Shown here piece after piece: positions 1,280 to 63,526 of a stretch of 64,000 nt of DNA. The stretch's first letter is position 1. The number at the start of each line of letters is the position of its first letter. Position numbers and translations under genes: made by a program. This DNA is from Scyliorhinus canicula (Eukaryota): positions 97,363,575-97,427,574 of the forward strand of contig NC_052164.1 of assembly GCF_902713615.1 (NCBI RefSeq). Direction: 5' to 3'. A model generated the notes under the pieces. It saw nothing but the letters and a program-made list of their open reading frames with translations, searched no databases and was not told the origin of the DNA.

Positions 1280-1364
1280 GAACCGAAAGTAAATCGGTTT
1301 GGAGAACAAAGTTGGTTTCGTTTTCCGTCTCTGATCAGTGTCGGCAGGAATAGCCAAGCCGGAG
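1280..1364 (+). promoter_or_regulatory. Putative ISRE promoter and non-coding exon 1 of the 4381 gene
   Basis: IRF-like GAACCGAAAGT at 1280-1290 and ISRE GGTTTCGTTTTCC at 1314-1326. Inr-like TCAGT at 1335-1339, donor GAG|GTAAAG at 1364/1365, locally CpG-rich. Confidence 0.6.
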
Positions 1365-1594
1365 GTAAAGTGGGGTTTTCATTCTGAATTTTGGAAAGAG
1401 CTTTTAGGTGACTGTCGCTATTTTACACTGAGCGGGAAATCGACCCGTTTAAAGGTTGGCAGCGGTAAGGATGTTTAAATTCCCGGGTAGATGTGCTGAA
1501 TTGCAGAGAGTGGAAAATGGGATGTTGCAAATGCCACAGGAACCATTCGTTACCCCATCAGACAACACGTCTCACTGACTGAGGCTGAGAAAGT

Positions 1595-1620
1595 TGTGTG
1601 TGTGTGTGTGTGTGTGTGTG
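1595..1620. repeat. (TG)n microsatellite
   Basis: 13 TG units. Confidence 0.9.
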
Positions 1621-3580
1621 GCAGACATGGGCTATTTCTCAGACCCGCTCCTCTCTGAGAACTTTTGAACAACTTTCTGCAACTTCTTGTATCCAACCCG
1701 CCCGGGTTCCTGTCTGACGTTTTTGTTAATTTTGCTGGTTGATGCATTTGGGATAGTTAACTTGACTAACACGGGGGGGGGGAGGGGGGGGGGTAGGTTG
1801 TACTGAATTCTGCAGCACAGAAATAGGCCTGTTTGTGCTTCACTCCTCTCGGTCTCTCATCCACCCTATCAGCATATCCTTCTCTACCTTCTCCCCCTCT
1901 TGTACCTACCTGGATCCCACTGAAATTCACCTGTTTCCATTACTTCATCCATTCCTGGGGCAATGAGTTCCTCACCTCTCTTTGGAGTAAGGAGGTTTCT
2001 CCTGACTGAATTCCTTATTAACAGTGATCACCTTGAGGCTGCAGTTTTGTGCCCCTCTGGCCGTGCTTTCGACAGGGGAGGGCACGTAAAATAAGGTGGG
2101 TGCCAACTCCACCATCCTTCACCCACCCCCCAAACTTGTCCCCGTGATGCTTGGGATGAGTGGGAACTGAAATCCACAGCCCGCCTGCCCTATTCAAATA
2201 AATAATCAAGGGTCATTAAGCTTGTGAACAAGCCAATAGGCCGCGATAATACTCTGCCCACACCCAGCTGTGTACCCCTCTACCACGGCTGCATTCAGAG
2301 CCGGGTGCCCCTGGAGAGAGGGAGCATGATGTATCCACTGCTATCCTCAACACCACCTGTGCCCGTTTGGCCCCACAGGGGCTGGGCTGGGCTGCCTTAT
2401 CATAGAATCCCTGGGGCAGTATGGTGGTGCAGTGGTTAGCACTGCTGTCTCATGGCGCCAATTTCTCAGGTTCGGTCCCGGCTCTGGGTCACTGTCCGTG
2501 TGGAGTTTGCACATTCTCGCATGTTTGCGTGGGTTTCGCTCCCACAGCCCAAAGATGTGCAAGGTAGGTGGATTGGCCACGCTAAATTGCCGCTTAATTG
2601 GAAAAAATGAATTGGGTTCTCTAAATTTAAAAAATATCATAGAATCCTTACAGTGCCGAAGGAGGCCATTCAGCCCATCGAGTCTGCACCGATCCTCTGA
2701 AAGAGTACCCGACCTAGGCCCACTATCCCAGTAACCCCACCTAACCTTTTGGACACTATGGGGCAATTTAGCATGGCCAATCCACCTAACCTGCACATCT
2801 TTGGACTGTGGGAGGAAACCGGAGCACCCGGAGGAAACTGACGCAGACACGGGGAGAACGAGCAAACTCCCTACAGACAGTGACCCGAGGCCAGAATCTT
2901 CCGCACCTTTAGGGGCCAAACCCTCACATTGAGGGGCTAGGCCTGCGCCTGAGTGGTTCCCACTCCGCCGGCTGGCGTGAATGGCCTTTGGTGCCACGGC
3001 AGCCGGGGCCCAAAGGACTTCGCCAGCCGGCGTAAGTCCGCGCATGCGCGGCTGCAGACGTCATACCGGCACATGCGCAGAGGAGTGGGTCTCTTCCGCC
3101 TCCGCCATGGTGAAGACCATGGCGAAGGTGGAAGAAAAAAAGTGCCCCCACGGCACAGGCCCGCCGGCGATCGGTGGGCCCTGATTCTGGGTCAGGCCAC
3201 CGTGGGGGCACCCCCCGGGGTCAGAACGCCCCGCACAACCCCCAGAACCCCGGATCCCGCCCGCGCCGCCAATCCCACCAGTCATGTAGGTTGTTTACTC
3301 CACGCCGGCGGGAGAGGCCTGTCAGCGGTGGGACTTCGGCCCATTGCGGGCCGGAGAATCACTGCGGGGGGCCTGCCGACTGGCGCGGCGCGATTCCCGC
3401 CCCCGCAGAATCTCGGGGGGCGGACAATTCGGGACACGGCGGGGGCGGGATTGACGCCGGCCCCAGGCGATTCTCCGACCTCCCGCCTATTGTCTTCACC
3501 CTGTGTGAAGTACAGTATTGAGCATGCTCAATCTCTGACAGTGGAGTAATCCCAGGAGTTCAAATATTCACCAAAAAGGC

Positions 3581-4380: not shown

Positions 4381-5022
4381 ATGTCCATTACATTTTACGG
4401 CTGGGAGGCCATCAATGAGGATAAAGGGCATCTGAAACCGGGGCAAAAGCTTCAAGATGGTAGAGGCTATACCATGTACCACGGGACCCACAAAAACAAT
4501 GCCGCAAAAATAATATGTTCAGGGTTTGTACCATCCGTAGATGGACTCCTGGGTCCAGGGGTATACATTAGCAGAGATAGGAATAAAGCAAGGGTGTACC
4601 CAAAGACAGTACCGAAAACTGACAGAGTGGTCTTCAAGCTGAAAGTTAGAGTTGGAAAAGTGAAGAAAATAGACAAGGATAACCATCCCCTGCAAAAAAC
4701 CTGGCATCAGCAAGGCTACGACTGTGCCTGGGTCCCACCAAATTGCGGGATGCAGTCCATTCCGAGTCAAAAAGAAGAAGACTGCGTCTGGGACCCCAAA
4801 CGGATAACGGTGGTGGATATCGCCTACGCAAATGACCTGGTCAAGAAAGATCTGAGGAAGCTGATAAGCGAACAGACGATGGCCAAGGAAGCGGATGTCA
4901 AGGATCAATGCAACGTCTGTGGCCACCGACAATATTCATCTCATGAAATTCAGAAATGCTGGGGTTGTGAGACGGTCGTCTGCCCTTTTATGAGCAAACA
5001 TGTTTGTAAAAAAGGGAGATAG
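4381..5022 (+). CDS. gig2: Gig2-like PARP-fold ADP-ribosyltransferase-domain protein, long type with C-terminal Cys/His finger (213 aa, single coding exon)
   Basis: Motifs YTMYHGT, GLLGPGVYISRD, ARVYP, VGKVKKID, HPLQKTW, GYDCAWVPP and EEDCVWDP are typical of Gig2. Splice acceptor tttccattacag ends at 4340; AATAAA at 5296-5301. Confidence 0.9.
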   Translation: MSITFYGWEAINEDKGHLKPGQKLQDGRGYTMYHGTHKNNAAKIICSGFVPSVDGLLGPGVYISRDRNKARVYPKTVPKTDRVVFKLKVRVGKVKKIDKDNHPLQKTWHQQGYDCAWVPPNCGMQSIPSQKEEDCVWDPKRITVVDIAYANDLVKKDLRKLISEQTMAKEADVKDQCNVCGHRQYSSHEIQKCWGCETVVCPFMSKHVCKKGR

Positions 5023-11599: not shown

Positions 11600-11709
11600 G
11601 AAATTGAAAGTTAAATATTGCTAGTGTGAGCGAAGTCTAAGTGCTTCTCTTTAAAAGGAATCTACTCTAACAAAGTTTTTTATCCACTAATACAATTCAA
11701 ATCAAGTGG
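11600..11709 (+). promoter_or_regulatory. Putative ISRE promoter and non-coding exon 1 of the 14196 gene
   Basis: GAAATTGAAAGT at 11600-11611, TATA-like TTTAAAAG at 11650-11657, donor TGG|GTGAGT at 11709/11710. Confidence 0.55.
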
Positions 11710-12150
11710 GTGAGTATACTGATATTTTAAATATCAATATTTTACACTGTTTACTGATTGGTGTCTGAAAGCTGTGGCCACTGCAGACATGTATGATTAC
11801 TTCCTGATATTTCCTTCATTGCAGCTGCTTGATGTACATGTTTTACCGTTCAATACATGGAATCATTTTGTGTTTTGTTTTCTAAGTGTTGCACAGGTGC
11901 TGATTTAGTGCATAAATATTCTGAACAGGGGCTTAACAAACCAGGAAGTATCAGGTAAAATTCCCCACCGTGTTGAGTGATCTACTCTAACTGGGGTGGG
12001 GCTACAATCAGTCACGGTGCCCAGACAAGACAAACAATCAGGCTTTTTGTTCCCGATTATGATCCTGAGGAGTTTCCTGACAAAATGCAATGATCAGATG
12101 AAACCAAGAACCGGTTTTGTAATGATGATCTGAACAGTTGAATATCTTAC

Positions 12151-12793
12151 TGATGTGTTGGGTACTCTGGATCTGTGGAGACTGCGTTTACCTCAGCAGT
12201 AACATAGACAGGCTACCAACACTTGTAGAAGTACAACTCTATTTTATTTAACTACGAGCTGTTAAACATACTTGCACTGTGGGTTGACACTATGTTAGGT
12301 TTTTTTTTTAAATTTAGAGAACCCAATTATTTTTTCCAATTAAGGGGCAATTTAGAGTGGCCAATCTACCTATCCTGCACATCTTTGGGTTGTGGGGGTG
12401 AAACCCACGCAGACACGGGGAGAATGTGCAAACTCCACACGGACAGTGACCCAGGGCCGGGATTCGAACCCGGGTCCTCAGCGCCGTAGGCAGCAATGCT
12501 AACCACTGTGCCACCGTGCTGCCCTACACTATGTTAGGTTGACTGAAGACCTATGGCTAACCTGACCAGCCTATACTGCTAGCACATGGTAGATGTTTGT
12601 GCTACTGACTGCGGGCTCTGTCTGTCTCAGAGGCTGCATCCCGAATGAGCGGGAAAACTAGTGCCCTCTGGCTTTATAGTGACCGTGCCCAATCTGGTGA
12701 TTGGCTGCTGTGTTGTGTGTGTTGATTGGTCTTGCAGTGTGTCAGTCAGTGTGTGTCTATGCACCATCATATACTTATGTGTATATTATGACA
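12151..12793 (-). mobile_element. LTR-like element containing a nested HE1 SINE (12302-12525)
   Basis: TG...CA ends, but no clear TSD for the outer element. The nested SINE has a 15-bp TSD ACACTATGTTAGGTT (12287-12301, 12526-12540). Confidence 0.55.
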
Positions 12794-12980: not shown

Positions 12981-14195
12981 TGCAGAGTTTTTCAGTAGAG
13001 AAAGCAGCTTCTTGACCCATCGTGCCTCTTTCAGCATCTTGAAAGAGATTTCCAGACAGTCTCAAGCCCCATTCTATTCTAAAAGCCCTGCAAATGTTTC
13101 CCTTTCAATTACATATCAAAACTCTTTTTTAGAGTTAGTATTATTGAATCTCTTTTCAACACTCTTCCAGGCAGTATATTAATGACTGCTCACTACATAC
13201 AGATACCTCCTCATTTTCCCTCAGATTATTTTGACCGTTGCCAACTCTCCAACAGTGGAAACCTTGGGCGGGATTTCCGTTCCCCGAAGCCGATTTTGTA
13301 ATTGACGATCGGGAGAAGAATCCCTTTTGACGGTGAAATCGGGGACGGCACCTGTTTAATGCAGGTTTTGTATGCTCCGCCTCCTCCCAAACGGCATCGT
13401 CAAGTCGCGCGCCACACGCCACTGAGACAGCCTCTGATGGGCCGAGTTCCTGACGGCACGGTTCACTTCTGGTCTCAGCCGTCTGATTGGGATGCTAGGT
13501 AATGACGTGCTACATGGCCCGTCAACCCATGGGAATCCACTTGGGATGTGCGAAGTGCTCACTGAACCACGATTACCAATTTCCGCTAAGCAATTGCCTT
13601 CAGCTGTACGGCCAGAGGCCTCGGCAGTTGGCGGGGCTCATGGGTGGTCGGCTGGGGCGGACAGACAAAAACAAGCGTTTCCCCTGGAACAGGTACACAC
13701 GATCCAGGAGTTGGCTGATGGTGCCGCGAGCGGTTGCCTCTTGGATTCCCCCCCCAGCGCCCCCCAAAACCTCCCATGGTGGTCCACCCCTAGCCGACCG
13801 TCCAACACCCCCCCCATCAAGCACTGGGGCGGCAAGCCCAGCTCCCCCGGGTTCTTTGCTTGTGAGCAAAGATGCCTCACACAGCCACAGGCATGTACCT
13901 GATCACACACATCAATTTTTACAAGTAATGTTTCTAACATGCACATTTAGCATTGTAATTCATACAGACATTCACAAACAAGCTACATACACAACATGAG
14001 AGTGTTCACAGCATCACATAACAATCTTTTTACATGCACATGTACCCTACCCTTTTTAGAGTAGATTTTATCCAAATTATACAATTGTAAGATCAAGAAA
14101 TCTTCAAGGTGATATATCTGTTCAATTTTACAGTTGAATTTATTTTTGTTTTCTTCGTTACAGGTCCCTATTGAGCAGTCAGAACAAGTGGCGAG

Positions 14196-14843: not shown

Positions 14844-15170
14844 AACCATCTCGACCCGATGGGACCGCCACCTGCCTCTATTTTTCAGTCTTTTTCTCCA
14901 CAGCTTTGACATTGCCTGCTTAACGAAATACTGCTGGGAATCTTGGCTCGGCACATTTACCTTTCTCCCCTGTTGGCCATGTCTGCTGGTTCATTGCCCT
15001 TGAAAAGAGAGTTATGATTGGCTTGGCTCTTGGAGGTGTGGAAACTGGAACTGTCCGACGCAGTGAATCTGATATCCTGCAGATCAAAATAAGTCAGGCA
15101 AAGTTTAATCAAAGGCACTTTGCTGGGGTAGATTCTGTCCACAATTAAGGGAAACCGGGAAATCCCTCTT

Positions 15171-15727
15171 TTTTAAAAAATAATTTTTATTGGATTTTTT
15201 TACAGAAAATATGACAACAAACAATGAAATGCAACAAAATAACCCCATAATAACTGTAACACCCCCAAGACCGTATCAACGCATGTATCACATCCCCCCC
15301 ACCCCCCAAACCCAGTGAACAACAACAGAACTTAAAAATAAATTAAAATTAAATAAACAAACATAGTCATCGTTCCCCCCCCCTTTTCCCACCCCCTCCT
15401 CCCCCCCTCCCCCCCGGGTTGCTGCTGCTGCTGTCCCAGTACCCTATCATTGAGCCAGGAAGTCGAGGAAAGGTTGCCACCGCCTAAAGAACCCTTGTAC
15501 CGATCCTCTCAGGGTGAATTTGACCTTCTCTAGCTTAATAAAACCCGCCATGTCATTGATCCAGGTCTCCACGCTTGGGGGCCTCGCATCCTTCCATTGT
15601 AGCAAGATCCTTCGCCGGGCTACTAGGGACGCAAAGGCCAGCACACCGGCCTCTTTCGCCTCCTGCACTCCCGGCTCCACCCCAACCCCAAAAATCGCGA
15701 GTCCCCAGCCTGGCTTGACCCTGGATC
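15171..15727 (-). mobile_element. Short 3' fragment of the same L1 family
   Basis: ORF 15447-15680 is nearly identical to the C-terminus of ORF 28922-29620. Flanked by an imperfect TSD, gggaaatccctctt (15157-15170) and gagaaattcctctt (15728-15741). Confidence 0.85.
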
Positions 15728-41830: not shown

Positions 41831-42054
41831 TTTTAAAATAAATTTAGATTACCCAATTATTTTTTCCAATTAAGGGGCAATTTAGCATGGCCAATCCACC
41901 TACTCTGCACATTTTTGGGTTGTGGGGGCGAAACCCTTGCAGACACGGGGAGAATGTGCAAACTCCACACGGACAGTGACCCAGAGCCAGGATCGAACCT
42001 GGGACCTCAGCGCCGTGAGGCGGTTGTGCTAACCACTAGGCCACCGTGCTGCCC
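41831..42054 (-). mobile_element. HE1-type SINE
   Basis: tRNA-like A/B boxes and core GGTGGATTGGCCATGCTAAATTGCCC. 16-bp TSD ATCCATTGACACAGTT (41815-41830, 42055-42070). Confidence 0.85.
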
Positions 42055-42164: not shown

Positions 42165-42398
42165 AAGGGCAGCACGGTGGCCTAGTGGTTAGCACAACCG
42201 CCTCACAGCGCTGAGGTCCCAGGTTCGATCCCGGCTCTGGGTCACTACCCGTGTGGAGTTTGCACATTCTCCCCGTGTCTGCGTGGGTTTCGCCCCCACA
42301 ACCCAAAGATGTGCAGAGTAGGTGGATTGGCCACGCTAAATTGCCCCTTAATTGGAAAAAATAATTGGGTAATCTAAATTTAAAAAAAAAATTAAAAA
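42165..42398 (+). mobile_element. HE1-type SINE
   Basis: Same family as 41831-42054. TSD AAATTGTTAG (42155-42164, 42399-42408). Confidence 0.85.
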
Positions 42399-42682
42399 AA
42401 ATTGTTAGGTTCGATGAATGTTGAAAGAAACTAATAAGAATGTTGAAAACGTGAAGGACAGAGAATATTTATATTGAATATTGTCACAAATAGGCATGTC
42501 TCCCTCTTCTGACGGATCGCTGGCAAAAAGTGAGGGGTCGTGATAGGGTTTCCTTAAAATTTATTAAACTGTTAAAAATGTTAAGGGTGTGGTACTTGAT
42601 TAGCAGCACCTCCATTTGATTGTCCCTCAATTGTTTCGATTCAAGGATGCTTTCGACAACGTAACGCTGTTTTGAGGGAATT

Positions 42683-42768
42683 GAAACTGAAACTTTGAAA
42701 ATTACATTATAAAGACCAGCTGTGTGCACATCTCACTGCAGAGTTACTAGCTGAGGGGCAAGATGAGT
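42683..42768 (+). promoter_or_regulatory. Orphan ISRE-TATA promoter with mutated splice donor; its unit has no coding exon
   Basis: GAAACTGAAACT at 42683-42694, TATAAAG at 42708-42714. Donor reads AAG|ATGAGT (G>A at 42763). Confidence 0.7.
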
Positions 42769-45700
42769 GCGTGAACTCCCTAAAGTTCTGTTCCTGATAA
42801 ATTGTAAAAGAACTGGAAGGGACTTGTAGAAAATATTTCTTCCTGCAGCGAGTGCACTGCCAGAAGGAACAGTGAAAGCAGATTCAATAACTTTAAAAAA
42901 GAAATTATTAAATATTTGAATTGAAAAAGGATGCAGGCCTGTGAGGAAAAGGAAAGGAGTGGTATCAATTGGATAGTTTGCTCAAAGCCTGTTTCTGTGC
43001 TGTTAATTCTAAGATTTACTGATAGTGTTGTTGTATAATGCAGTCAACCCCATCTGGAATAGTGTGTGGTGTTTTGTTAATTTGACAATAACGAGAAAAG
43101 AGCAACAAAAGTAATTATGTCCCCTGGAATTTAAACAGCTAAGAAAGTTACCCATCTTTGTGCTGAGAGAACTTAAGTCCTCAAGTTCATGAAATGGTTT
43201 GAGGAGTTTCCGTAGGTCAATTGTTCCGCATGGTGAAGGATCATAAATTTAAAATAAGAAAGTTCAGAGGAAGATATGCAGATAACAGGTATCACGGTGG
43301 AGCAGTGGTTAGCACTGTTGCTTCACAGCTCCAGGGTCCCAGGTTCGATTCCCCACTGGGTCACTGTCTGTGCGGAGTCTGCACGTTCTCTCCATGTCTG
43401 CGTGTGCTTCCTCCGGGTGCTCCGGTTTCCTCCCACAGTCCAAAGATGTGCAGATTAGGTGGATTGGCCATGCTAAATTGCCCTTAGTGTCCAGGGATGT
43501 ACAAGTTAGGTTATGGAGTTATGTGGATAAGGAGGGGGTGGATGGGCGAGTGGACATGGGTCGGTGCTGACTTGATGGGCTGAATGGCCTCCTTCTGAAC
43601 TGTAGAGATTCTATGATATCAATTTTTCAGACTAACGATGGTCATTGTGAGATTTGTTACCAGAGAAGGCACTGAATAGAAGAGAGAGAAGTGACTGAAA
43701 GATGTGGCTGAAATGTTGGTAGTTTGGTTTAATCCCTGAGAAAACATTTAGTTATTGATGATGGTAGGTGGGATTCTCCATCCCGCTGCACCTGTTCCCT
43801 GGGGTGATCTGCCCCCCCGCCTGCAGCGGGAACCACCGTTCCGGCAGCTGGCCAATGGGGTTTTCCACTGTGGGCACTCCAATGCCGTCGGGAAATCCAC
43901 GGGAGTGAGCGCGCTGCCGGCAAAACGGAGGATCCCGCCGACGGAGAATCCATCCCAGTGTTTTTATTTTTCCCTTCCAGCTCATAATTGTGAACACAGA
44001 CTTGCAGCCAATGTTCCTTCAATTGCTTTTGTGTATGGTCTATTTATTGCACCATGTGGTGGGCGTTGGTTGACTGAGCATTTATGCATCAAAACGAATG
44101 TTGCATAACCTGTTGGTAGTTGCTATTAAACTTTATTTGATACAGTTTTTGCATTTCCTAGTTTTACATTCCCGTTAGAATAGGGACGAGTATGAAGTTG
44201 GCTGTGCAATGAGTGCAACATCTTACAAACTTGGTGCAATCATTATTCAGGACAGGTGTTGTGAGGCAAGCTAGACTTCAAAGGCAGCTAAACTGTAAAT
44301 CACAGTGAGTCACCACTTGCAAATAATTGTCGGAACTTTCCACTGGTGGGAGTTTACGCTCCCGCTGAAGTCAATGGCGGCTGGAATTCTCCGGACGTTG
44401 GGATCTTCTTTTGCCGCCGGCAGCGCCCACCCATACACGGGTTTCCAGGCAAGCATGGGGTTGGCTTCATTGGAAAATCTCATTGGCAAGCGGCTGGAGT
44501 AGAGAATCCCGCCGTCAGCGAACGGCGCGCCTCCAAGAAACACACAGCCGGGCAACCGGACAATCTGGATTTTCCAATGGTTCGCCGCATTTTCCAATCC
44601 AACTTCCCTCCATGGCGAGACTGTAAAATTCAGCCCGGAATACCAATCAGGTCACTTTTGACGGTTTATTTGTAAAGGGCTGGTTAAGCACACTGGGCTA
44701 AATCGCTGGCTTATAAAGCAGATCAAGCAGGCCAGCAGCACGGTCCGATTCTCGTACCAGCCTCCCCGGACAGGCGCCGGAATGTGGCGACTAGGGGCTT
44801 TTCACAGTAACTTCATTGAAGCCTACTTGTGACAATAAGCGATTTTCATTCCAACACCACTAGGGCTATGTTGTGAAAACTCGGAAGAAGATGACATTTG
44901 AAACATTAAAGTAACACTGAGAATGCCTGAGGCTTTTTAAATGAAAGGGAGAAGTCCCACAAGGGGTTAACAGCAGCAGCCTGTTTTGAAAGCAGACAAC
45001 TTCACAGACAGGGAAGAAAACAGATAGGAAAAGAAAAAAGTTAGAAAAGTCATTTGTTTGACTTAAACTCTTAAAGTTATATGAAAGGGAACAGTATTTC
45101 ACTAATCTTTAAGCAATGAATTATTTTTGAACAATTAAGAAAAGCAGCCAGAATCTAAAGTATAAGATAAGGAACAACTGTTAAGTGTGAAAAGTTGCTG
45201 ACACTGGTAATAAAGTGAAACAACTGATTTACAAATTAAGAAAACGAGAAGGTGACAAAGTTACACTATAACGTATATCATTTTTGAAGTTAAAACCTTT
45301 TAGAAGATGGCCAAAGCAGATAAAGTTAGAGACAAGAGGGGATAACCCTAACGTGACAGTAGCTTAACCCAAAGATGACCCGGGTTGAATCTGAGAAAAC
45401 CCATTAAAAAGGACATAAATCCAAAAGGGTGCTGTATAAGACACAGACAAATTAATTACATGTTAAGCAAAGCGAGAAAGTTCCAGTCAGGAATGGAGAG
45501 CTGGTGAGCATGAAGCTGCACTGTCGCTGTTAAAGTAGCGCCACGCTTCTAAACCGATAAAACTTAGCTTTCAAACGGTCAAGCAGGCAGTCTGAAGGGT
45601 GTCAGGTGCACAGGTTAAGGGGCCCTAAATTGCCATAGAAACTGGGGAAAATGAGCAGATAATCAGAATCTTCCTCGGTGATGGGACAAGCAACATCGAC

Positions 45701-47241: not shown

Positions 47242-47321
47242 GAAACTGAAACTTTGAACATTAGGTTATAAAGTCCAGATGTGTGCATATCTCACTGCAG
47301 TGTCACAGATCGAGGGGAGAG
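47242..47321 (+). promoter_or_regulatory. ISRE-TATA promoter and non-coding exon 1 of the 50488 gene
   Basis: GAAACTGAAACT at 47242-47253, TATAAAG at 47267-47273, Inr A at 47294, donor GAG|GTGAGT at 47321/47322. Confidence 0.75.
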
Positions 47322-48671
47322 GTGAGTGCGTGAACTCCCTACATTTCAGTTCCTGATAAACTATGAAAGAACTAAAAGGGAGATATAGAAAACAGTTTTT
47401 CCTGCAGTGAGTGCTGTGCCAGAAAGAACGGTGAAAGCAGATTTAATAACTTTCAAAAGGAAATTATTAAATATTTGAAATACAAAAGAGTGCAGCACTG
47501 TGAGGAAAAAGAAGGGAGTGGCATTATTGGATCGTTCGTTCAAAGCCTGTTTCTGTGCTGTTAATTCTAAGATTTACTGATAGTGTTGTTGTATAATGCA
47601 ATCGACCCCATCTGGAATAGTGTGTGGTGTTTTGTTAACTTGATAATATCGAGAGAAGAGCAACAAAGGGAATTATGTCCCCTGGGATTAAAACAGCTAA
47701 GAAAGTTACCCATCTTTGTGCTGAGAGAATTGAAGTCTTCAATTCATGAAACGGTGTGAGGAGTTTCTGTAGCTCAATTGTCCCGCATGGTGAAGGATTA
47801 TGAATTTAAAATGAGGAAGTTCAGAGGAATTGTGAGATATCACGGAGGTGCAGTGGTTAGCACTGTTGCCTCACAACGCAAGGACCCGGGTTTGATTCCG
47901 GCCTTGGGTGATTGTCTGTGTGAAGTTTGCACGTTCTCTCCGTGTGTGCATGGATTTCCTCCGGGTGCTCCGGTTTCGTTCCACAGTTCAAAGGTGGGTA
48001 CGTGAGGTGGATTGGCCATGTTAAAATGACCCTTAGTGTCCAGGGATGTGCAGGTTAGGTTATGGAGTTACGGGGATAAGGAGGGGTGGATAGGCGTGTG
48101 GACATGGGTCGGTGCTAACTTGATGAGTGAATAACTTCCGTCTGAACTATCGAGATTCTATATCAGTATTTCAGACTAACGATGGTCATTGTGAGATTAG
48201 TTACCAGGGAAGGCACTGAATGTAAGAGAGAGAAGTGACTCAGAGATATGGTTAAAAGGTTGATAGCTGGGTTTAATCCATGAGAAAACATTTATTTATT
48301 GGTGGTGGTGTCTTTATTTCTCTACTCCAGATAACAGTTTAAATACAGCCAATGTTCTTTCAATTGTTTTTGTGGTTTATTTATTGCATCAGGTGGTGGG
48401 CTGAGCATTTATGCATCTCTGGGATGTTGCATACCTGTTGGGTCCACTGCAAAGAACATTTCGGATTGCTGTGCGCACACATGGTTTAGAGGGAACATTG
48501 TTCATAGTATTGAACTCAGTTTCCTGTTCGAAATATTACGGAGGTTAATCTTTATACTTGTACATTTTGAAGTTATGCTGTGCTATACTTCACAGCGCCA
48601 GGATCCCAGGTTCAATTCCCGGCTTGGGTCACTATCTGTGCGGAGTCTATATGTTCTCCCCGTGTCTGCGT

Positions 48672-48702
<31 letters not shown>

Positions 48703-50487: not shown

Positions 50488-50982
50488 ATGGCTGATTACA
50501 GAAATATTTGGGCTGAAGAGGATGGACCTGGTTTTGTTCCAACAAAACTTCAAAGTTGTATAGCACCACAAGATGACAAGATCTATGTGATGTACCATGG
50601 AACCCGTGCCAGTGATGTCGATTCCATTCGCAAAAATGGTTTCCAACGATCCAAGGATGGCATGCTGGGCCCTGGAGTCTATGTCAGTAGAGACATTAGG
50701 AAAGCCAGCAGATATCCACTGGATCTGCGTGACAGTCAGAAGGCTGTGCTTAAGTTAAGAGTGAATGTGGGAAAAGTCATAAAGATAAATTATCAACGAC
50801 ACCCATATCAGAAGACATGGCGTAGTCATGGCTACGACACTGCCTGGTGTCCTCCCAATTGTGGGATGGTACCAAGTGGGCTGGAGGAAGATTGTGTCTC
50901 AAATCCGACCAGAATAAAAGTTCTTGAAGTCCTTCGCCCAAAAGCTTGGGGGGACCCCTGGGCCTACCCTGATGAGTACTGA
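50488..50982 (+). CDS. gig2: Gig2-like protein, short type (164 aa), intact, apparently chimeric
   Basis: Same motifs as the 38938 gene. Acceptor AG at 50458-50459, AATAAA at 51585-51590. Confidence 0.9.
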   Translation: MADYRNIWAEEDGPGFVPTKLQSCIAPQDDKIYVMYHGTRASDVDSIRKNGFQRSKDGMLGPGVYVSRDIRKASRYPLDLRDSQKAVLKLRVNVGKVIKINYQRHPYQKTWRSHGYDTAWCPPNCGMVPSGLEEDCVSNPTRIKVLEVLRPKAWGDPWAYPDEY

Positions 50983-53184
50983 ATTAAATAGTGGTCAGCG
51001 AAAACAGAGGTGTGGGGTGGTGGGATGGGAAGGGGATTTCTATACTCTGTCTAGGGCTAGCGAGGGAAGGTTCTGCCATGTTCTTGCTATTGAGGTTGGC
51101 CTTGTGTGAACAACAGGGGATAATGGAATTGAGTTAAATGTGAAGCTCCACAATCACAGAGCCTGACAACACCCATTGGAGTAATTGTTTTGCAGACTCA
51201 GCTCCTGGCAATGAAACCTATGCGCTAAGGGGCACAAATGAGAATATTAGTCCCTGACACCATCATATCTCATTCTCAGCGCCCCTCAGCTCCCGGATCA
51301 GAGTCCCTGAGCTCATACCTCATTATATAGATTCACACATGAGAAATGGTTATACCAATTCAGATGAAGCAGAGTCTCCGTGTGAGTCACTGCCGTCAGT
51401 AGAGGAACAGGGCATTTTGGGGAGAAAAAAGACAGTTGATGTCACTGAAGGCAATACAGGGAAATCAGAGGTAAAGGTAAATCTAACCTTCTTTGAAGGA
51501 CAATTTGTCAAAGCAATCACTTTGTATCATTCACTTTGTGATGTGAAAAACCATCGATTTGTACTTAATGTTTCATACAAACCAAATAAAATTATTGACT
51601 GTCTTTTTCTGTAATAAACCAATAGCACTGGAATGAAATGGATACTAAAAGAATTGTGCTTGTCCAATCTGTAAAAAAAAAAATTCTGATTAACATAAAA
51701 GGTCTTGCCTGGATGAGTGTGGCTCCAACAACACTCTGAAAGTTGGACAGCATCCAGGACAAAGCAGCCCGCTTAGTTCTCACCTCATCCATCACCTTTA
51801 ACATTCACTCCCTCCATCACTGACGCACAGTGGCAGCCGTGTATACCATCTATAAGATGCACTGCTGCAACTCAGCAAGGTTCCTTCAACAGCACCTTGA
51901 GAACTGACAACATCTACCACATAGAAGGACAAGGGCAGCAGCTACAACGTCGCCTCCAAGTCACTCACCATCCTGACTTGGAAATACATCACCGTTCATT
52001 CACTGTCACTGGGTCAAAATCCTGGAATTCCCTTCCTAACAGCACTGTGGGTGTACCTACACCACATGGACTGCTGTGGTTTACAAAGGCAGCTCACCAC
52101 CACCTTCTCAAGGGCAATGAAGGGATGGGCAATAGATGCTGCCCTGGTCAGTGATGCCAACATCCCGTGAGCAAATGTGTGGTGTGGGGTGAGGGTGCAC
52201 TTTTACTCCCTCTGCTTGGTGGAAACTAATGGAGGTTAATCGCTGAGCGATGATTCGAATGTTTTGTTTTCACCTTGTCACAGTGTTGCCGAGAATGTAC
52301 GCAAGTACGCACAGTACTGAGGAGAACGTACGCAAATTAGGATTGTAATTGTCTCACTGAGTGGAAAGTTCCGATGGATCCTTCACTCGGTGACCAAGCT
52401 GGGGTTTGTCAGCCTGTTGAGTGGGGATGGGGCAGATGTCCAACTTGAGAGTTACCCAACTTGATAGGAAGGATGGCAAGCTGAGACTCAGAGGATCAAT
52501 AGATCGAACCGGGAAGCTGCAAACAGTTGGACAACATGGTAGCACAGTGATTAGCACTGTTGCTTCACAGTGCCGGGGTCCGCGGTTCAATCCCTGGCTT
52601 GGGTCACTGTCTGTGCGGAGTCTGCACGTTCTCGCTGTGTCTGCGTGGGTTTCCTGCGGGTGCTCCGGTTTACTCCCACAAGCCACGAAAGACGTGCTGT
52701 TAGGTCATTTGGGCATTCTGAACTCTCCCTTTCTGTACCGACAAATGCCGGAATGTGGTGACTAGGGGATTTTCACAGTAACTTCATTGCAGTGTTAATG
52801 TAAGCCTACTTGTGACAATAAAGATTATTATTCTTATAAACATGCTGATTTAAAATGCAGGCTGAGAATGGGGCTGGAATATCGAGGCTGCAGACAACGC
52901 CACATTGGTTGACATCTAAATGGTTGGAAATTGGCAGGGGATAAGGTATAACCTCCCCTGATTGTACAGTCCACAAATCTGGTGGTCAACCATCCCTCAA
53001 CCATGGCGTCCTCCATCCATTCACACCTGTACAGTCCCTTGAATCCCAACATGTTGAAGCTCAACATCCTATCGTCTGCAGCTACAATATCCCACAGACT
53101 GAATGATTCCATATTCTCACTAAATTGCACCTCCACCTTTCCACACGTGCGTTAAGTACAGGCACAAGTCTTATATTTAGTACA

Positions 53185-55658
53185 GCACTCGGAGTTCTGC
53201 TGGATCCCAGGATCCAGCTGGGTCCCAGCCTGATGCTTAGCCTGTGGCATTGGGTTACCTGGAGCTGATGGAGACGATAGGGAGCGGCTGGGACATTCAG
53301 AGAGAGAAGGCAGTTTCACTCCAACAGGTCCATAGCCGATTAGAGGAGTCCCAGAGGCTACGGGCACAGGAGATGGCGCTGGCAATGCATGGCACTGAGG
53401 CCAACACTGCTAAGGTGGCGACTGCGGTGGAGAGCTTGGTGCACAACGTCAGGGCCATTAGTGAAGGTGTCCAAGGCATCGCACAGTTGGTGATGGCCAT
53501 AGCTGAGTGTCTCGGCTGAATGTCTGCCTTGGCGGGGGATGCCATCCAGCACCAGGCCGACCTTGGTGAGTTTCTGCGGGTCACGTCCCGCTCTCAGGTG
53601 GGCATGGCCGAGGCGCTGCGGTGCTTCTCCCAGTCTCAGATGGGGATTGCTGAGGCGCTGCAGAGCATGTCTCAGTCACAGACGACCATCACCGAGGGTG
53701 TTGGCACGATGGTGCGGATCATGGGGATCCGCCAGGGCTGGCTAAGCCAGACGATACAGGGGCAGCTGGAGCTCGAACCAGCTGCCCCTCCACCTCCAGG
53801 GGGTACTGACCGGGAAGAGAGGTGGCGCTGGGTGCCAACCTGGACCCGCCCCAGGAGTTTTGACGTTGGCCTCCAGCTCCCCCGGGTTCCACCCCTCTGA
53901 TGAGGCCGCGCTTTGGACTCAGCACACGGGACAGAGTGGCACGACTGTGCATGTGCGTCGACAAGTGAGCTGGGGCCGGTCCCAGAGCTGCCAGAGGATA
54001 CCCGCCAGGGGCATTGAAGGCCGCAGGACAAGTTAAGCAGCTGGCACCCTCCACTGCTGCTGTGCGTCCTGGGGAAACACCTAGACATAGTGGTGGAGCT
54101 GGGAGGACCTGATACAGCGCAGATCACTTAGAGCACTGGGGGAGAGGGGGTGGGCTCGGGGGATAGGTAGGTGGTGAGAGGGGTGTCGAGGGAGGCGGTT
54201 GGCAGGGTGGGTGGGGGTGGGCGACACCATCGGGAGAGTAGGGTCTGGTATAAAACATGAAACAACCTTGGGCACAACCAGTAGGAAGCCTCTGTCACTT
54301 CCCTTCCGCAATGCACATGCAGGTGATGGGTGTGAGCGAGCACTCAGCAGACAGGCAGGGGTCAGACTGTAGCATAGATTGAGGAGCACCAGCGCTCAGC
54401 CCTCTGCAGGTTACCATCACCCTCCTGCCCTCGACAGTGGCCTTCTGATGCGGCCGACACCGTCCCAGCCCCTCTGGAGTGAGGTGACATCTACCCTGGG
54501 GGAGTGGGAAATGGGGGTGGCGGGATGGGTCAGGTAGCGATGATGGACCAGGCGCTGCCTCCTCGTGCTCAACCTCCTCGTGCTCGTCCTTATCCTCTTC
54601 AGAGGTGGCCACATGTTCAGCATTACCAACCTCCGGCACGTCGCCCCGCTGTTGTGCCAGGTCGTGCAGACCACAACAAAGTGGACGACCCTCCACGCGG
54701 TGTACCGCAGGGCACCGCCGGGGCGGTCAAGGCATCGGAACCGCATCTTGAGGAGTCTGATGCACCGCTCGGTGACAGTCCGGCTGGCTGATTGGGTCTT
54801 GTTGTAGCGGGTCTCCGCTTCGGTCTCCGGCCTCTGTCTTGGCCTCAATAGCCAGGTCCTCAGCAGATACCCCTTATCCCCCAAGAGCCAGCTGCCTACC
54901 CTGGCGTGCCCCTCAAAGAGGGAAGGGATGTCTGACCTCCCCAGGATTTAACTGTCGTGCACACGCCCCGGGAAGCGTGCACACACCTGCATTATCTTCA
55001 TCTGGTGGTCGCACACGAGCTGTAAGCTGAGGGAGTGGAACCTCTTTCAGTTAACATGGGGCACCTCCATATGACCCGGTGAGCACAGGGCAACATGCGT
55101 GGAATCTATTACCCCCTGGACCTGGGCCATCCCAGCGATGATGGACGAACCTACTGTCCGGGCATCTTGCTGGGCTTAGTCCATGTCAAAGATGATGTAG
55201 TCTTCCACCCGGGCATACAGAGCATCCGTTACCTTTCGGCGGGTTGTGGCCTGTGAGATACTACACAGGTCCCCGCTTGAGCCCTGGGATAATCCCGTGG
55301 CATAAACGTTCAGGGCTGCGGTAGCCGTGGCCTGCCACAGGGGGTGGGTGTCCACCTCCTCCACGTGGTGCCAAGTCCGCAAGGACATGGGACAGGTGTT
55401 GCACCATTTCCTATTGAGGCGGAGCCTCCTGCGGCACGCGCTGTCCGTCATCTGTTTGTATGAACAGCAGCCCCTGTACACCCTTGGCCATCATGGGACT
55501 CCCCCCTCCGGGCCCCTCCTTGACCTGATGGGCGGCCGGGTCCTCAGGGTGTGGGGCAGGGTACGGCACATGGGCCGCTGCCTTGAGCATCTGCTGCCGC
55601 TGCTACCGCCATCTCCGTCATCTGTCCGCATCGCGTAGCCCCAACACCACTAGGGCTA
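53185..55658 (-). mobile_element. Degenerate PIF/Harbinger DNA transposon: transposase on the - strand, fragments of a convergent second ORF on the + strand
   Basis: GDKGYLLRTWLLRP...PETEAETRYN...ERCIRLLKMRFRCLD (54417-54884) and ALNVYATGLSQGSSGDLCSISQAT (55176-55481) are HARBI1-like. Heptad-like + strand ORFs lie at 53244-53900. Boundaries approximate. Confidence 0.8.
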
Positions 55659-57518: not shown

Positions 57519-57598
57519 GAAACTGAAACTTTGAACATTAGGTTATAAAGTCCAGATGTGTGCATATCTCACTGCAGTGTCACAGATCGAGGGGAGAG
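57519..57598 (+). promoter_or_regulatory. ISRE-TATA promoter and non-coding exon 1 of the 60765 gene
   Basis: GAAACTGAAACT at 57519-57530, TATAAAG at 57544-57550, Inr A at 57571, donor GAG|GTGAGT at 57598/57599. Confidence 0.75.
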
Positions 57599-60500
57599 GT
57601 GAGTGCGTGAACTCCCTACATTTCAGTTCCTGATAAACTATGAAAGAACTAAAAGGGAGATATAGAAAACAGTTTTTCCTGCAGTGAGTGCTGTGCCAGA
57701 AAGAACGGTGAAAGCAGATTTAATAACTTTCAAAAGGAAATTATTAAATATTTGAAATGCAAAAGAGTGCAGCACTGTGAGGAAAAAGAAGGGAGTGGCA
57801 TTGATTGGATCGTTCGTTCAAAGCCTGTTTCTGTGCTGTTAATTCTAAGATTTACTGATAGTGTTGTTGTATAATGCAATCGACCCCATCTGGAATAGTG
57901 TGTGGTGTTTTGTTAACTTGATAATATCGAGAGAAGAGCAACAAAGGGAATTATGTCCCCTGGGATTAAAACAGCTAAGAAAGTTACCCATCTTTGTGCT
58001 GAGAGAATTGAAGTCTTCAATTCATGAAACGGTGTGAGGAGTTTCTGTAGCTCAATTGTCCCGCATGGTGAAGGATTATGAATTTAAAATGAGGAAGTTC
58101 AGAGGAACTGTGAGATATCACGGAGGTGCAGTGGTTAGCACTGTTGCCTCACAACGCAAGGACCCGGGTTTGATTCCGGCCTTGGGTGATTGTCTGTGTG
58201 GCGTTTGCACGTTCTCTCCGTGTGTGCATGGATTTCCTCCGGGTGCTCCGGTTTCGTTCCACAGTTCAAAGGTGGGTACGTGAGGTGGATTGGCCATGAT
58301 AAAATGACCCTTAGTGTCCAGGGATGCGCAGGTTAGGTTATGGAGTTACGGGGATAAGGAGGGGTGGATAGGCGTGTGGACATGGGTCGGTGTTAACTTG
58401 ATGAGTGAATAACTTCCGTCTGAACTATCGAGATTCTATATCAGTCTTTCAGACTAACGATGGTCATTGTGAGATTAGTTACCAGGGAAGGCACTGAATG
58501 TAAGAGAGAGAAGTGACTCAGAGATATGGTTAAAAAGTTGATAGCTGGGTTTAATCCCTGAGAAAACATTTATTTATTGGGGGTGGTGTCTTTATTTCTC
58601 TCCTCTAGATCACAGTTTAAATACAGCCAATGTTCTTTCAATTGTTTTTGTGGTTTATTTATTGCATCAGGTGGTGGGCTGAGCATTTATGCATCTCTGG
58701 GATGTTGCATACCTGTTGGGTCCACTGCAAAGTACATTTCGGATTGCTGTGCGCACACATGGTTTAGAGGGAACATTGTTCATAGTATTGAACTCAGTTT
58801 CCTGTTCGAAATATTATGGAGGTTAAATTTTATACTTGTACATTTTGAAGTTATGTTGTGCTATACTTCACAGCGCCAGGATCCCAGGTTCAATTCCCGG
58901 CTTGGGTCACTATCTGTGCGGAGTCTATATGTTCTCCCCGTGTCTGCGTAGGTTTCCTCCGGGCACTCCGGTTTCCTTCCACAAGTCCCAAAAGACGCGT
59001 TTGTTTGGTGAATTGGACATTCTGAATTCTTCCACTGTGCACCCGAATGTGGCGACTCGGGGCTTTTCACAGTAACTTCACTGCATTGTTAATGTAAGCC
59101 TACTTGTGACAATAATAAAGATTATTCTTATTATTATGGCAGTTGCTATTAAACTTTCCGTGATATGGTTTTTGCATTTCCTAATTTTACATTCCCGTTC
59201 GAATAGGGACGAGTATGAAGTTGGCTGTGCAATGAGTGCAACATCTTACAAACTTGGTGTAATCGTTATTAAGGACAAGTGTTGTGAGGCAAGCTAGACT
59301 TCAAAGGCAGCTAAACTGTAAATCATAGTGAGTCACCACTTGCAAATATGTCGGAACTTTCCACGGGTGGGATTTTACGCTCCCGCTGAAGTCATTGGAG
59401 GCTGGAATTCTCCGGCTGTTGGGATTCTCTGTTCCCGCCACTCACGGGGATAAGTGGCGGGAAGAGAGGATCCCGCCGTTACTGAACGGTGGACCTCTGA
59501 GAATAGTGACTTAATCAGTGATTAACAATTGGAATATCAAGCTTCAAAACTGCATATTCTGAGAAATTTCTCCTCTTTATTACAAAGACAACTTAAACAT
59601 ATTCTTCTGCAGAGGAAAGACTGAAATCGCGTGTCATAGTTAAATGAAATATATTAATTTATGTCAGCCTTTCACAACAGCTGGACCTGTCAAAGTACTT
59701 TCCAGTTAATTAAGTACTTTTGAAATGTAGTCACTGTTAAAATATACAAAATGTGGCTGCCAATTTGCGTGTAGCAAACTCCAGCAAGGTAACAACCACC
59801 TGATAACCTGTTTCTGTGATGTTGGTTGAGTGATAAATATTGCTGCTGATGGTCGGGAATGTATCACGATGCCTCGAACAGCTTCTTAATGCTGTCGATC
59901 ATTTCCTTTATTTCCCTCCAATTTTGTTTAATCCAAGGGTGCTGGCAGCCCTCACCCTAATCCCCTGCGTGCTCATTCTTTATATGTGAGCTATAGCGGC
60001 GAGTGCCAGGTAGGATATTCTGCTACTGGGGCCTCACAATTAAACCGAATCCTGTCTTTACTCGATATTCATGCCAGGAAGTGCTTTTCAGCAAGTGATC
60101 AAAAGCAGAGATTGCAAGAGATCAGAGGTTATAGGGAGAAGGCAGGAGAATGGGGATGAGAAAATATCAGCCACAATTGAATGGCAGGGCAGACTTATCA
60201 TAGAATTTACAGTGCAGAAGGAGGCCATTCGTTGATGGGCCAACTGACCTAATTCTGCTCCTATCTCTTCTGGTCTTACTGTTTCACCCTAATTGTTAGA
60301 GATGAGCAAAAATAAGAGTAGCATCCACCCGATGCAGTTAAGTTTCTTAATTCAGCACAATTTTGGGATCAAAACCAGGGGCTGGTTTAACACCGTGGGC
60401 TAAACAGCTGGCTTGTAATGCAGAACAAGGCCAGCAGCGCAGCTTCAATTCCTGTACCAGCCTCCCCGAACAGGTGCCAAAATGTGGTGAGTAGGGGCTT

Positions 60501-60764
60501 TTCATAGTAATTTCATTGAAGCCTCATGTGAGGATAAGTGATTATTATTATTAATTTTATTATTATTAAATCCACGCTCTATGTCTGTGCATTTTTAAGT
60601 GTAAGTGTCATTGGAGGAGTTCACCAGTGAGCACTAATAGCATCAGGGAAATGTACAGCAATGTCAAATTGTGGAAAATTCAATACAGAATTAAAAATGT
60701 ATTTTCTGCATTTAAGTTTTCTTTCCTTTGTTAAAGGTTAAGTTGACAAGTTGACCGGATTACC

Positions 60765-61259
60765 ATGGCTGATTACAGAGATATGTGGGCTGAAGAGGAT
60801 GGGCCTTGTTTTGTTCCACCAAAGCTTCAAAGCTATATAGCACCAGAGAATGGCAGGATCTATGTGATGTACCATGGAACCTCTGCCAGTAATGTCGATT
60901 CCATTCTCAAAAATGGTCTCCAACGATCCAAGGATGGCATGCTGGGCCCTGGAGTCTATGTCAGTAGAGACATTAGGAAAGCCAGCAGATATCCAATGGA
61001 GCTGTATGACAATCAGAAGGCTGTGCTTAAGTTAAGGGTGAATGTGGGAAAAGTCATAAAGATTGATTATCAAGGACACCCATATCAGAAGACATGGCGT
61101 CGTCATGGCTTCGACACTGCCTGGTGTCCTCCCAATTGCGGGATGGTACCAAGTGGGCTGGAGGAAGATTGTGTCTCAAATCCTACCAGAATAAAAGTTG
61201 TTGATGTCCTTCCCCCAAAAGCTTGGGGGGACCCCTGGGCCTACCCTGATGAGTACTGA
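60765..61259 (+). CDS. gig2: Gig2-like protein, short type (164 aa), intact
   Basis: Same motifs as the 38938 gene. Acceptor AG at 60735-60736, AATAAA at 61862-61867. Confidence 0.9.
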   Translation: MADYRDMWAEEDGPCFVPPKLQSYIAPENGRIYVMYHGTSASNVDSILKNGLQRSKDGMLGPGVYVSRDIRKASRYPMELYDNQKAVLKLRVNVGKVIKIDYQGHPYQKTWRRHGFDTAWCPPNCGMVPSGLEEDCVSNPTRIKVVDVLPPKAWGDPWAYPDEY

Positions 61260-63526
61260 ATTAAATAGTGGTCAGCGAAAACAGAGGTGTGGGGTGGTGG
61301 GATGGGCTGGGGTTTTCTACAATTATACTCTGTCTTGGGCTAGGGAGGGAAGGTTCTACCATGTTCTTGATATTGAGGTTGGCCTTGTGTGAACAACAGG
61401 GGATAATGGGATTGAGTTAAATGTGAAGCTCCACAATCACAGAGCCTGACAACACCCATTGGAGTAATTGTTTTGCAGACTCAGCTCCTGGCAATGAAAC
61501 CGACGCGCCAAGGGGCACAAATGAGAATATTAGTCCCTGACACCATCATATCTCATTCTCAGTGCCCCTCAGCTCCCGGATCAGAGTCTCTAAGCTCATA
61601 CCTCATTGTATAGATTCACACATGGGAAATGGTTATACCAACAGAGATGAAGCAGAGTCTCAGTGTGAGTCACTGCCGTCAGTAGAGGAACAGGGCATTT
61701 TGGGGAGAAAAAAGACAGTTGGTGTCACTAAAGGCATTGCAGGGAAATCAGAGGTAAAGGTAAATCTAACCTTCTTTGAAGGACAATTTGTCAAAGCAAT
61801 CACCTTGTATCATTCACTTTGTGAAGTGAAAAACCATTGATTTGTACTTTTATACAAACCAAATAAAATTATTGACTGACCTTTTCCGTATTAAACCAAT
61901 AGTAATGGAACGAAATGGATACTAAAAGGATTGTGCTTGTCCAATCTGGGAAAAAATTATTCTGCTTAATGTAAAATCCTTGCCTGGATGAGTGTGGCTC
62001 CAATAACATTCAAGAAGTCGGACTGCATCCAGGACAAAGCAGCCCGCTTGGTTCTCACCTCATCCATTACCTTTAACATTCACTCCCTCCATCACTGACG
62101 CACAGTGGCAGCCGTGTATACCATCTATAAGATGCACTGCTGCAACTCAGCAAGGTTCCTTCAACAGCACCTTCAGAACTGACAACATCTACCACATAGA
62201 AGGATAGGGGCAGCAGCTACAAATTCTTCTCCAAGTCACTCACCATCCTGACTTGAAAATGCATCACCGTTCATTCACTGTCACTGGGTCAAAATCCTGG
62301 AATTCCCTTCCTAACAGCACTGTGGCTGTACCTACACCACATGGACTGCTGTGGTTTATGAAGGCAGCTCACCACCACCTTCTCAAGGGCAATGATGGGA
62401 TTGGCAATAAAGGCTACCCTGGTCAGTGATGCCAACATCCCGTGAGAAAATGTGTGGTGTGGGGTGAGGGTGCACTTTCACTCCCTCTGCTTGGTGGAAC
62501 CTAATGGAGGTTAATTGCCAAGTGATGACCCTATTGCTTTCATAGAATCATAGAATTTACAGTGCAGAAGGAAGCCATTTGGTCCATCGAGTCTGCACCG
62601 GCCCTTGGAAAGAGCACCCCACTTAAACCCACACCTCCACCCATAACCCAGTAACACCACCTGACGTTCTTGGAGACCAAGGGCAATTTAACATGGCCAA
62701 TCCACCTAACCTGTACATCTTTGGACTGTGGGAAGAATCCGGAGCACCCGGAGGAAACCCACGCAGACACGGGGAGAATGTGCAGACTCCGCACAGACAG
62801 TGACCCAAGCCGGGAATCGAACCTGGGCCCCTAGAGCTGTGAAGCAACGGTGCTCACTATTCTACTACTGTGCCACCCTTTGTTTTGGCATTGTTACAGT
62901 ATCGATGCCACTGAGGAGAATGTACGCAAATTGGTATGGTAATTGTCTCACTGAGAGGAAAGTTCCGATGGATCCTTCACTCGGTGACCAAGCTGGGGTT
63001 TGTCAGCCTGTTGAGTGGGGATAGGGCAGTTGTCCAATTTGAGATTTAGCCAATTTGACAGGAAGGAGGACAAGCTGGGAATCAGAGTATCAATAGACTG
63101 AGCCGCGAAACATCAAACATGCTGACTTAAAATGGAGACTGAAAATGGGAGTGGAAAGTTGAGGCCGAAGATGAAGCCACATTGGTTGACATCTAAATGT
63201 TTGGAAATTTGCAAGGGACAAGGCATAACCTCCCCTGACACCTTTGAACTCCCCTCCCCTGCCATTGATTCCATCACTAGATCTGTCACCCAACAGAGGC
63301 ACCAAAGGCTAAGTTCAAAGGTTACATTTGTGGGGTCAGGAGCCTCAGGACATTCCCTTGGCCCACACAAAGTACGCTTGTGCAGCCTGCGCCCCATTCA
63401 CCTGCCTCCCCAACCTCACAGTGACTTACCCGATTGCCCAACCACATGGCCACTTACTCTGCTTGCTGATCTGACGTGACCTGAACCCCAGTTTCCTGTC
63501 TGTCCCTCCATAACCCTCGACCACTC

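Follow-up and report, generated by a model that had tools for sequence, protein, structure and literature searches.

Gig2 genes are known interferon-stimulated genes (ISGs) in teleosts (PMC3617106). They have been reported from lampreys, from sharks and rays (expressed sequence tags of little skate and spiny dogfish), from ray-finned fishes and from amphibians, and are described as absent from amniotes (PMC3617106). Tandem clusters with pseudogenes, lineage-specific expansion and weak similarity to PARPs have been described (Zhang et al. 2013, PMC3617106). Comparative work has placed Gig2 among the PARP-related ADP-ribosyltransferases (ARTs) (PMC5512222). The Gig2 locus analysed here lies in a 64,000-nt stretch of the catshark Scyliorhinus canicula genome (contig NC_052164.1), referred to as the window, and all positions given are those of the window. 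The window encodes five intact Gig2 open reading frames (ORFs), all on the plus strand. Two are long (A1 and A2, 213 and 215 amino acids) and three are short (B1, B2 and B3, 164 amino acids each). Two further copies of the short type, psi1 and psi2, were found by tblastn with the window proteins and both are broken. The locus is a well-resolved case of a known family and both protein forms are already known. It is probably made up of an old gig2p-type pair and a young, unstable short array, in which genes driven by interferon-stimulated response elements (ISREs) encode PARP-type ARTs.

All five proteins passed the Pfam gathering cut-off for PF00644, the PARP catalytic domain, the match covering residues ~26-105 only. 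The Gig2-specific remainder (HP-QKTW-GYDTAW-PP-CGM-SG-EEDC) was invariant or nearly so across 51 family members. A2 was 57% identical to named teleost gig2p proteins over 98-99% of its length (zebrafish Gig2P: 57% over 98%), and its nearest matches were in the sharks Heterodontus (80%) and Chiloscyllium (78%). A1 had 90% identity to Scyliorhinus torazame proteins and 71% to its Chiloscyllium orthologue. B1 had 62% identity to crucian carp Gig2, the founding member, which is named 'interferon inducible protein' (E 8e-54), and 61% to zebrafish Gig2I. Its matches of 150-165 amino acids also included zebrafish Gig2L and copies from coelacanth, bichir, sturgeon, Xenopus, skate and ray. All named matches of A2 and B1 were from fishes, lamprey, coelacanth or amphibians, in a search that covered amniotes non-exhaustively. 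The representative search returned 268 clusters at E<=1e-30, some with multi-unit or long multi-domain members. One strong Gig2-type domain was seen inside a far larger sequence in P0284 (989 amino acids), P0327 (943), P0334 (1109) and P0329 (769).

The AlphaFold2 model of A2 had a mean predicted local distance difference test score (pLDDT) of 83.6, with values above 87 in the core and of 60-77 in the tail. Residues 25-143 of this model matched the catalytic domains of PARP2, PARP1, tankyrase and PARP3 with a Foldseek probability of 1.0 (E ~4e-6). The B1 model had a pLDDT of 86.3 and a predicted template modelling score of 0.81. It was superimposed on tankyrase-2 (1007-1160) with a VIA-align Z of 11.1 and a root mean square deviation of 2.8 A over 129 of 164 residues. 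The alignment ran along the whole ART subdomain of both tankyrase-2 (1007-1160) and PARP1 (846-1010), and the short protein is therefore predicted to be a complete minimal ART domain. The PARP/ART fold proposed by an earlier reading of the same DNA, made without database searches and called here the sequence-only reading, was thus recovered for both protein forms and agreed with the PF00644 matches.

The active-site motifs were conserved. HGT, GVY, AxxY and EED, which the sequence-only reading had listed for each intact ORF, were invariant in the five window proteins and across the 51 family members. A search of PDB sequences with A1 as a single sequence gave insignificant matches only, and a family profile was therefore needed. 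In the profile YHGT aligned to the catalytic His of PARP10 and PARP3, and GPGVY to the Tyr of their G-K-G-[VI]-Y motif. In the structural alignment to PARP1 (query 25-143, PARP1 853-999) H34 fell at H862 and E132 at E988 by equal end offsets. Y62 and Y73 are 11 residues apart, the same distance as between the two NAD+-stacking tyrosines of PARP1. Membership of a toxin family was rejected, as the Pfam matches to exotoxin A, diphtheria toxin and ART-PolyVal were all below cut-offs. These weak matches reflect the shared H-Y-E ART superfamily.

The long proteins carry a C-terminal tail with the pattern C-x2-C-x7-H-x4-C-x2-C-x4-C-x5-H-x-C, which is complete in both A1 and A2. Each of the eight Cys/His ligands was kept in 25-26 of the 26 long sequences compared, and the exact spacing in 24. 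The tail fits a putative two-zinc module. The Pfam match of the tail to zf-nanos was not significant (E 0.78).

To place the window proteins in the family a maximum likelihood tree was constructed from the catalytic-core columns only, with the tail excluded. A long clade and a short clade were recovered, each supported at 100/98, with A1 and A2 nested in the former and B1-B3 in the latter. A2 grouped with the long genes of Heterodontus and Chiloscyllium (99/95) and A1 was a divergent long-branch paralogue (end branch 0.64). B1-B3 formed a clade of their own (100/100), and its sister group was made up of short genes from ray and skate. Each of the two main clades holds cartilaginous, ray-finned and lobe-finned members, and both architectures therefore predate the jawed-vertebrate radiation. 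Gig2 membership and the division into two architectures, both proposed before, are supported by this tree. The proposal that the finger-tailed form is the older lineage is not, since the core-only tree shows two equally ancient clades. A difference in age held for the local copies, A1 and A2 being shared with Chiloscyllium and Heterodontus and the short copies being recent, and did not hold for the architectures. The short form is the canonical founder architecture, and in view of the tree it cannot be called a derived "minimal" enzyme.

In each of the intact genes an ISRE is located directly upstream of a tiny putative non-coding exon 1. The motif GAAANNGAAAS occurred 10 times in the window compared to 1.9 expected by chance, and six of the 10 were at promoter positions. 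The short genes share a module comprised of GAAACTGAAACT, 12 nt, TTATAAAG (the TATA element), ~48 nt and the donor G/GTGAGT (the slash marks the splice junction), followed by an intron of 3.1-4.0 kb and a polypyrimidine tract with an AAG acceptor 28 nt before the ATG. A conserved AATAAA is located ~605 nt past the stop. The A1 promoter is without TATA and consists of GAACCGAAAGT (1280-1290), the inverted ISRE GGAAAACGAAACC (1314-1326) and a GGAG/GTAAAG donor with its GT at 1365-1366. All three elements are kept in Chiloscyllium. The A2 promoter consists of the ISRE GAAATTGAAAGT (11600-11611), the TATA-like TTTAAAAG (11650-11657) and a GG/GTGAGT donor with its GT at 11710-11711. An inverted ISRE-like motif at 13096 was rejected as the A2 promoter because it lies outside the block conserved with Chiloscyllium, in which the conserved module is that at 11600-11711. 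A sigma-70 promoter scan was set aside as irrelevant to a vertebrate locus.

An ISRE-TATA-donor module with the same order and near-equal spacing was found 3.1 kb upstream of a short Gig2 gene of the skate Rhinoraja. It recurs at the next unit of the Rhinoraja locus and is also present upstream of a short copy in whale shark. These conserved modules are good comparative evidence for predicted control by IRF/ISGF3, which is distinct from an expression test. They are consistent with the interferon control put forward by the sequence-only reading, as are the ISREs at live promoters. Gamma-activated sequence (GAS)/STAT sites (TTCNNNGAA) were not enriched in the window (26 found, 21.5 expected). 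A second ISRE-like motif was seen in intron 1, ~210-260 bp 3' of the promoter ISRE, at 34996-35006 in B1 and 42946-42956 in the orphan copy described below. An NF-kB-like GGGATTTCCG overlapping a GAS-like TTCCCCGAA was seen at 13270-13290, inside A2 intron 1.

A1 and A2 had 51% amino acid and ~67% nucleotide identity and are old duplicates. The short genes lie in units of ~10-11 kb which differ from one another by 1-18%, and the B1-B3 proteins had 83-91% amino acid identity to one another. The B2 and B3 units were 96% identical over 5.4 kb. By sliding window the B2 unit was a mosaic. Its promoter and intron were 97-99.7% identical to B3, and its coding exon was ~93% identical to B3 but 96% to B1. 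The mosaic fits gene conversion or unequal crossing-over.

The unit of psi1 and psi2 is promoterless, its homology to the other units starting inside intron 1. Psi1 retains most of intron 1, an acceptor at 27336-27345 and a B3-like exon 2 of which ~30 codons from the start are left (27374-27465), past which homology ends in unrelated repeat sequence. Psi2 is split by a long interspersed element (LINE) of ~2.06 kb on the minus strand. The 3' end of this element is A-rich, and the target-site duplication on its two sides is perfect over 16 bp (28726-28741 and 30806-30821). The 3' piece of psi2 has an in-frame TAG (30836-30838), and the poly(A) signal of psi2 is at 31612. A second copy of the 3' part of this LINE (79.6% identity) was found at 15167-15727, just 3' of A2 and in the same orientation. 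A stretch of 1.3 kb (42433-43755) duplicates the B1 promoter and 5' intron and includes an orphan promoter. The ISRE and TATA of this promoter are those of the three short genes, its donor is changed to GATGAGT (GT to AT), and no coding exon is located downstream. Rapid turnover of the short copies, suggested before, is borne out by these mosaic units, the LINE insertion, the truncation and the orphan promoter.

The arrangement was compared to that of other elasmobranchs. Chiloscyllium has A1 and A2 orthologues in the same order, on the same strand and at ~9.8 kb spacing. In Heterodontus, compared by gene table only, a 214-amino-acid PARP-domain gene is located upstream of the A2 orthologue. 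The 759-amino-acid S. torazame RefSeq protein XP_072343848.1 (P0220), annotated as 'gig2o', joins four units in the order of the window, A1-A2-B-B, namely orthologues of A1 (90%) and A2 (93%) and two units of the short type (85-86%). It is probably one model into which four tandem genes were fused. Rhinoraja longicauda has a partial second short Gig2 (L001:11678-12064) 1.2 kb 3' of the intact skate gene, and the promoter module is seen again after a further 12.9 kb (19771). A tandem array with broken copies is therefore also present in skates.

The features of the window are listed in Table 1. The inventory of five intact plus-strand ORFs, two pseudogenes and one orphan promoter had been drawn up by the sequence-only reading, and its coordinates agreed with the ORF list, tblastn and the motif scan. 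The shark origin that it held probable is borne out by the 90% identity of A1 to S. torazame proteins, which marks the genome as that of a catshark relative. The limits it gave to the locus, 1280 and 61867, are the start of the first IRF/ISRE-like element of the A1 promoter and the end of the conserved AATAAA of B3. No Rfam matches were found in the window.

Table 1. Gig2 genes, gene remnants, promoters and repeats in the catshark window
Feature	Position	Strand	Remarks
A1 promoter and putative non-coding exon 1	1280-1366	+	Elements conserved at the Chiloscyllium orthologous locus
A1, long Gig2 (gig2p type), 213 aa, ART core and Cys/His tail	4381-5022	+	ORF, Pfam, tree; acceptor CAG ends at 4357
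A2 promoter and putative exon 1	11600-11711	+	Within a ~480-bp block conserved with Chiloscyllium
A2, long Gig2 (gig2p orthologue), 215 aa	14196-14843	+	ORF, Pfam, similarity, tree, model; acceptor CAG ends at 14163
psi1, promoterless partial unit	23810-27465	+	tblastn, unit alignment
psi2, short-type gene without own promoter	27739-31617	+	Coding pieces 28435-28740, 30806-31006
Non-LTR retrotransposon (RVT_1), 5'-truncated, inside psi2	28742-30805	-	16-bp target-site duplication
B1 promoter module	34784-34865	+	ISRE GAAACTGAAACT 34784-34795, TATA TTATAAAG 34808-34815, donor GT 34864-34865
B1, short canonical Gig2, 164 aa	38938-39432	+	ORF, Pfam, similarity, model; acceptor AAG ends at 38909; poly(A) signal at 40042
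Orphan promoter	42683-42771	+	ISRE and TATA intact, donor lost
B2 promoter module	47242-47323	+	ISRE 47242-47253, TATA 47266-47273, donor GT 47322-47323
B2, short Gig2, 164 aa, mosaic unit	50488-50982	+	Poly(A) signal at 51585
B3 promoter module	57519-57600	+	ISRE 57519-57530, TATA 57543-57550, donor GT 57599-57600
B3, short Gig2, 164 aa	60765-61259	+	Poly(A) signal 61862-61867
SINE-like copies, including those at	3-205, 2414-2634, 12300-12525, 22685-22894, 24060-24270, 41839-42054, 42167-42391	both	

A number of observations weigh against ISRE-driven ARTs in a functional array. No report of enzymatic activity of any Gig2 protein was found in the literature searched, and the core has ~130 residues compared to ~230 in PARP catalytic domains. 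The proteins may instead keep the ART fold, perhaps bind NAD+ or ADP-ribose, and serve as adaptors or as regulators of signalling that might boost IRF/interferon pathways, not as transferases. The title of a cited paper, which reports antiviral activity of grass carp Gig1/Gig2 through an IFN-independent pathway, is in line with such a role. An adaptor function is nevertheless judged unlikely. The H, Y, Y and E-E-D residues are invariant across 51 sequences and more than 400 million years, a degree of conservation that would be difficult to account for if the proteins had neither a catalytic nor an NAD+-dependent role, and the alignment of the short model extends over the entire ART subdomain of tankyrase. 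Regulation raises a similar doubt. The putative exon 1 is very short (about 25-30 nt) and its start site is a prediction. Zebrafish Gig2N, O, P and Q, of which Gig2P is the orthologue type of A1 and A2, did not respond to poly(I:C) in ZFL cells (PMC3617106). Eight ISRE-bearing gig genes in salmon were without response (bioRxiv 10.1101/2025.07.01.662619), presence of an ISRE and response being partly uncoupled there. The presence of an ISRE does not guarantee induction (PMC3617106; bioRxiv 10.1101/2025.07.01.662619). Some of the catshark genes, chiefly A1 and A2, might then be constitutive or tissue-specific and not interferon-stimulated, with ISRE-like motifs that are inactive or serve basal IRF control, and the A2 element does have one mismatch in Chiloscyllium. 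This seems unlikely, given that IFNphi1 induced both gig2p and gig2o in zebrafish larvae (bioRxiv 10.1101/693333) and that the A1 and A2 elements belong to conserved blocks, with a conserved splice donor directly downstream of each.

The state of the short genes was also considered. Pairwise ratios of nonsynonymous to synonymous substitution among B1-B3 were 0.86-1.29, that is close to 1, from few sites, and one or more intact short copies could therefore be drifting. Two of the five short-type coding copies are dead and an extra promoter copy is without a splice donor. The exact B1-B3 proteins were absent from the 15-billion-protein collection searched, which leaves them without an independent gene model. 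The three genes could on these grounds be recent duplicates on their way to becoming pseudogenes, in an array that is decaying and not adaptively diversifying. We regard this as improbable. The three reading frames are unbroken and have lost none of the family-invariant residues, and each gene retains an intact promoter, donor, acceptor and poly(A) signal. The 31 variable positions among B1-B3 fell in six of 74 conserved columns compared to 25 of 90 others (Fisher p=0.0013); as they avoid the family-conserved columns, the core is still constrained. A last concern is an assembly artefact from collapsed or duplicated haplotypes, a general risk in repeats and one to which the B2 and B3 units, with a local identity that reaches 99.7%, would be exposed. 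The lack of any N, the 1-18% difference between units and the mosaic pattern argue against duplicated assembly. The units also differ in transposable element content, coding sequence and flanks, S. torazame is modelled with the same gene order, and the skate has tandem short copies. The artefact was therefore rejected as very improbable.

In the preferred reading of the locus, with ISRE-driven PARP-type ARTs, the analysis itself shows the gene anatomy, the array dynamics, the conserved ISRE modules, the motif conservation, the fold and the family identity, and interferon induction, catalysis and targets are what we infer. The old gig2p-type pair A1-A2 is followed by the young, unstable tandem array B1-B3, together with two copies and one promoter that are dead. 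The live genes are built of two exons. A proximal ISRE, accompanied by a TATA element in the short genes and A2, would drive a very short non-coding exon 1, and after an intron of 2.4-4 kb a single exon holds the whole ORF. Interferon/IRF signalling would switch the genes on. The products would be small cytosolic PARP-type ARTs with a complete H-Y-Y-E NAD+ site that mono- or oligo-ADP-ribosylate host or viral targets. The putative two-zinc Cys/His tail of the long form would probably aim the enzyme at a partner, protein or nucleic acid. The short array evolves through unequal crossing-over, gene conversion, retrotransposon hits and truncation, with a constrained catalytic core and variable positions that change fast. 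A bolder version, for which the odds are poor, is that Gig2 was an ISRE-driven ISG, by then divided into two effector types, as early as the elasmobranch (probably jawed-vertebrate) ancestor, that the conserved two-zinc gig2p tail binds nucleic acid and the enzyme ADP-ribosylates viral RNA/DNA ends or a protein bound to nucleic acid, that the short type is a free ART that diversifies fast in an arms race with viral antagonists, and that this ancient antiviral arm of ADP-ribosylation was lost in amniotes.

The window offers a clean, fully resolved cartilaginous-fish Gig2 locus with both ancient branches of the family side by side. Catshark, whale shark and skate have the ISRE-TATA-mini-exon module in common, which is evidence from sequence that Gig2 came under interferon control before the shark-ray split. 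This bears on the ancestral vertebrate ISG set, in which Gig2 now counts as fish-specific or lost in tetrapods. A probable annotation problem was also identified, with four tandem genes fused in the S. torazame RefSeq and the short ORFs without a matching record in the collection searched.

Other repeats were seen in the window. A GC-rich insert (GC 0.54-0.56) at 53183-55641 is located between the B2 and B3 units and contains a DDE_Tnp_4 (Harbinger/PIF-like) transposase fragment on the minus strand (ORF 54417-54884). A repeat of ~200 bp resembling a short interspersed element (SINE) is present in more than 12 copies on both strands. Weak tRNA-like SINE heads were predicted by ARAGORN at 129-210 and 12448-12533. 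One SINE-like copy (38413-38731 region) lies in the B1 intron, just upstream of exon 2.

Compared to canonical teleost Gig2 (crucian carp Gig2, zebrafish Gig2D-L), B1-B3 are alike in length (~155-165 amino acids), have 61-62% identity, and share the invariant HGT/GVY/AxxY/EED positions and ISRE-bearing promoters. The window likewise shows tandem clustering, lineage-specific expansion and pseudogenes. Unlike the teleost genes, B1-B3 belong to a cartilaginous fish and form a species-level clade that is sister to ray and skate genes. A1 and A2 share the 213-220-amino-acid architecture, Cys/His tail and clade of gig2p (zebrafish DreGig2P and its teleost, sturgeon, coelacanth and caecilian orthologues). 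As a difference, sharks have two tandem copies, of which A1 is fast-evolving. Zebrafish gig2p and gig2o are located on a different chromosome from the main cluster (PMC3617106), whereas the long and short types are adjacent in the window. With the PARP catalytic domain (PF00644; PARP1/2/3, tankyrase, PARP10) Gig2 shares the ART fold, the H-Y-E-type NAD+ site, HGT and G-x-G-[VI]-Y. Unlike the PARPs it is much smaller, has identity of only 16-20% and is without the helical regulatory subdomain or other PARP accessory domains, and its C-terminal half (W-x-PP-x-CGM ... EEDC) is unmatched by the Pfam PARP model. Three features are modestly new relative to the literature searched: both ancient Gig2 branches lie next to each other in an elasmobranch, sharks and a skate share the ISRE-TATA-mini-exon module, and the gig2p Cys/His tail is strictly conserved.

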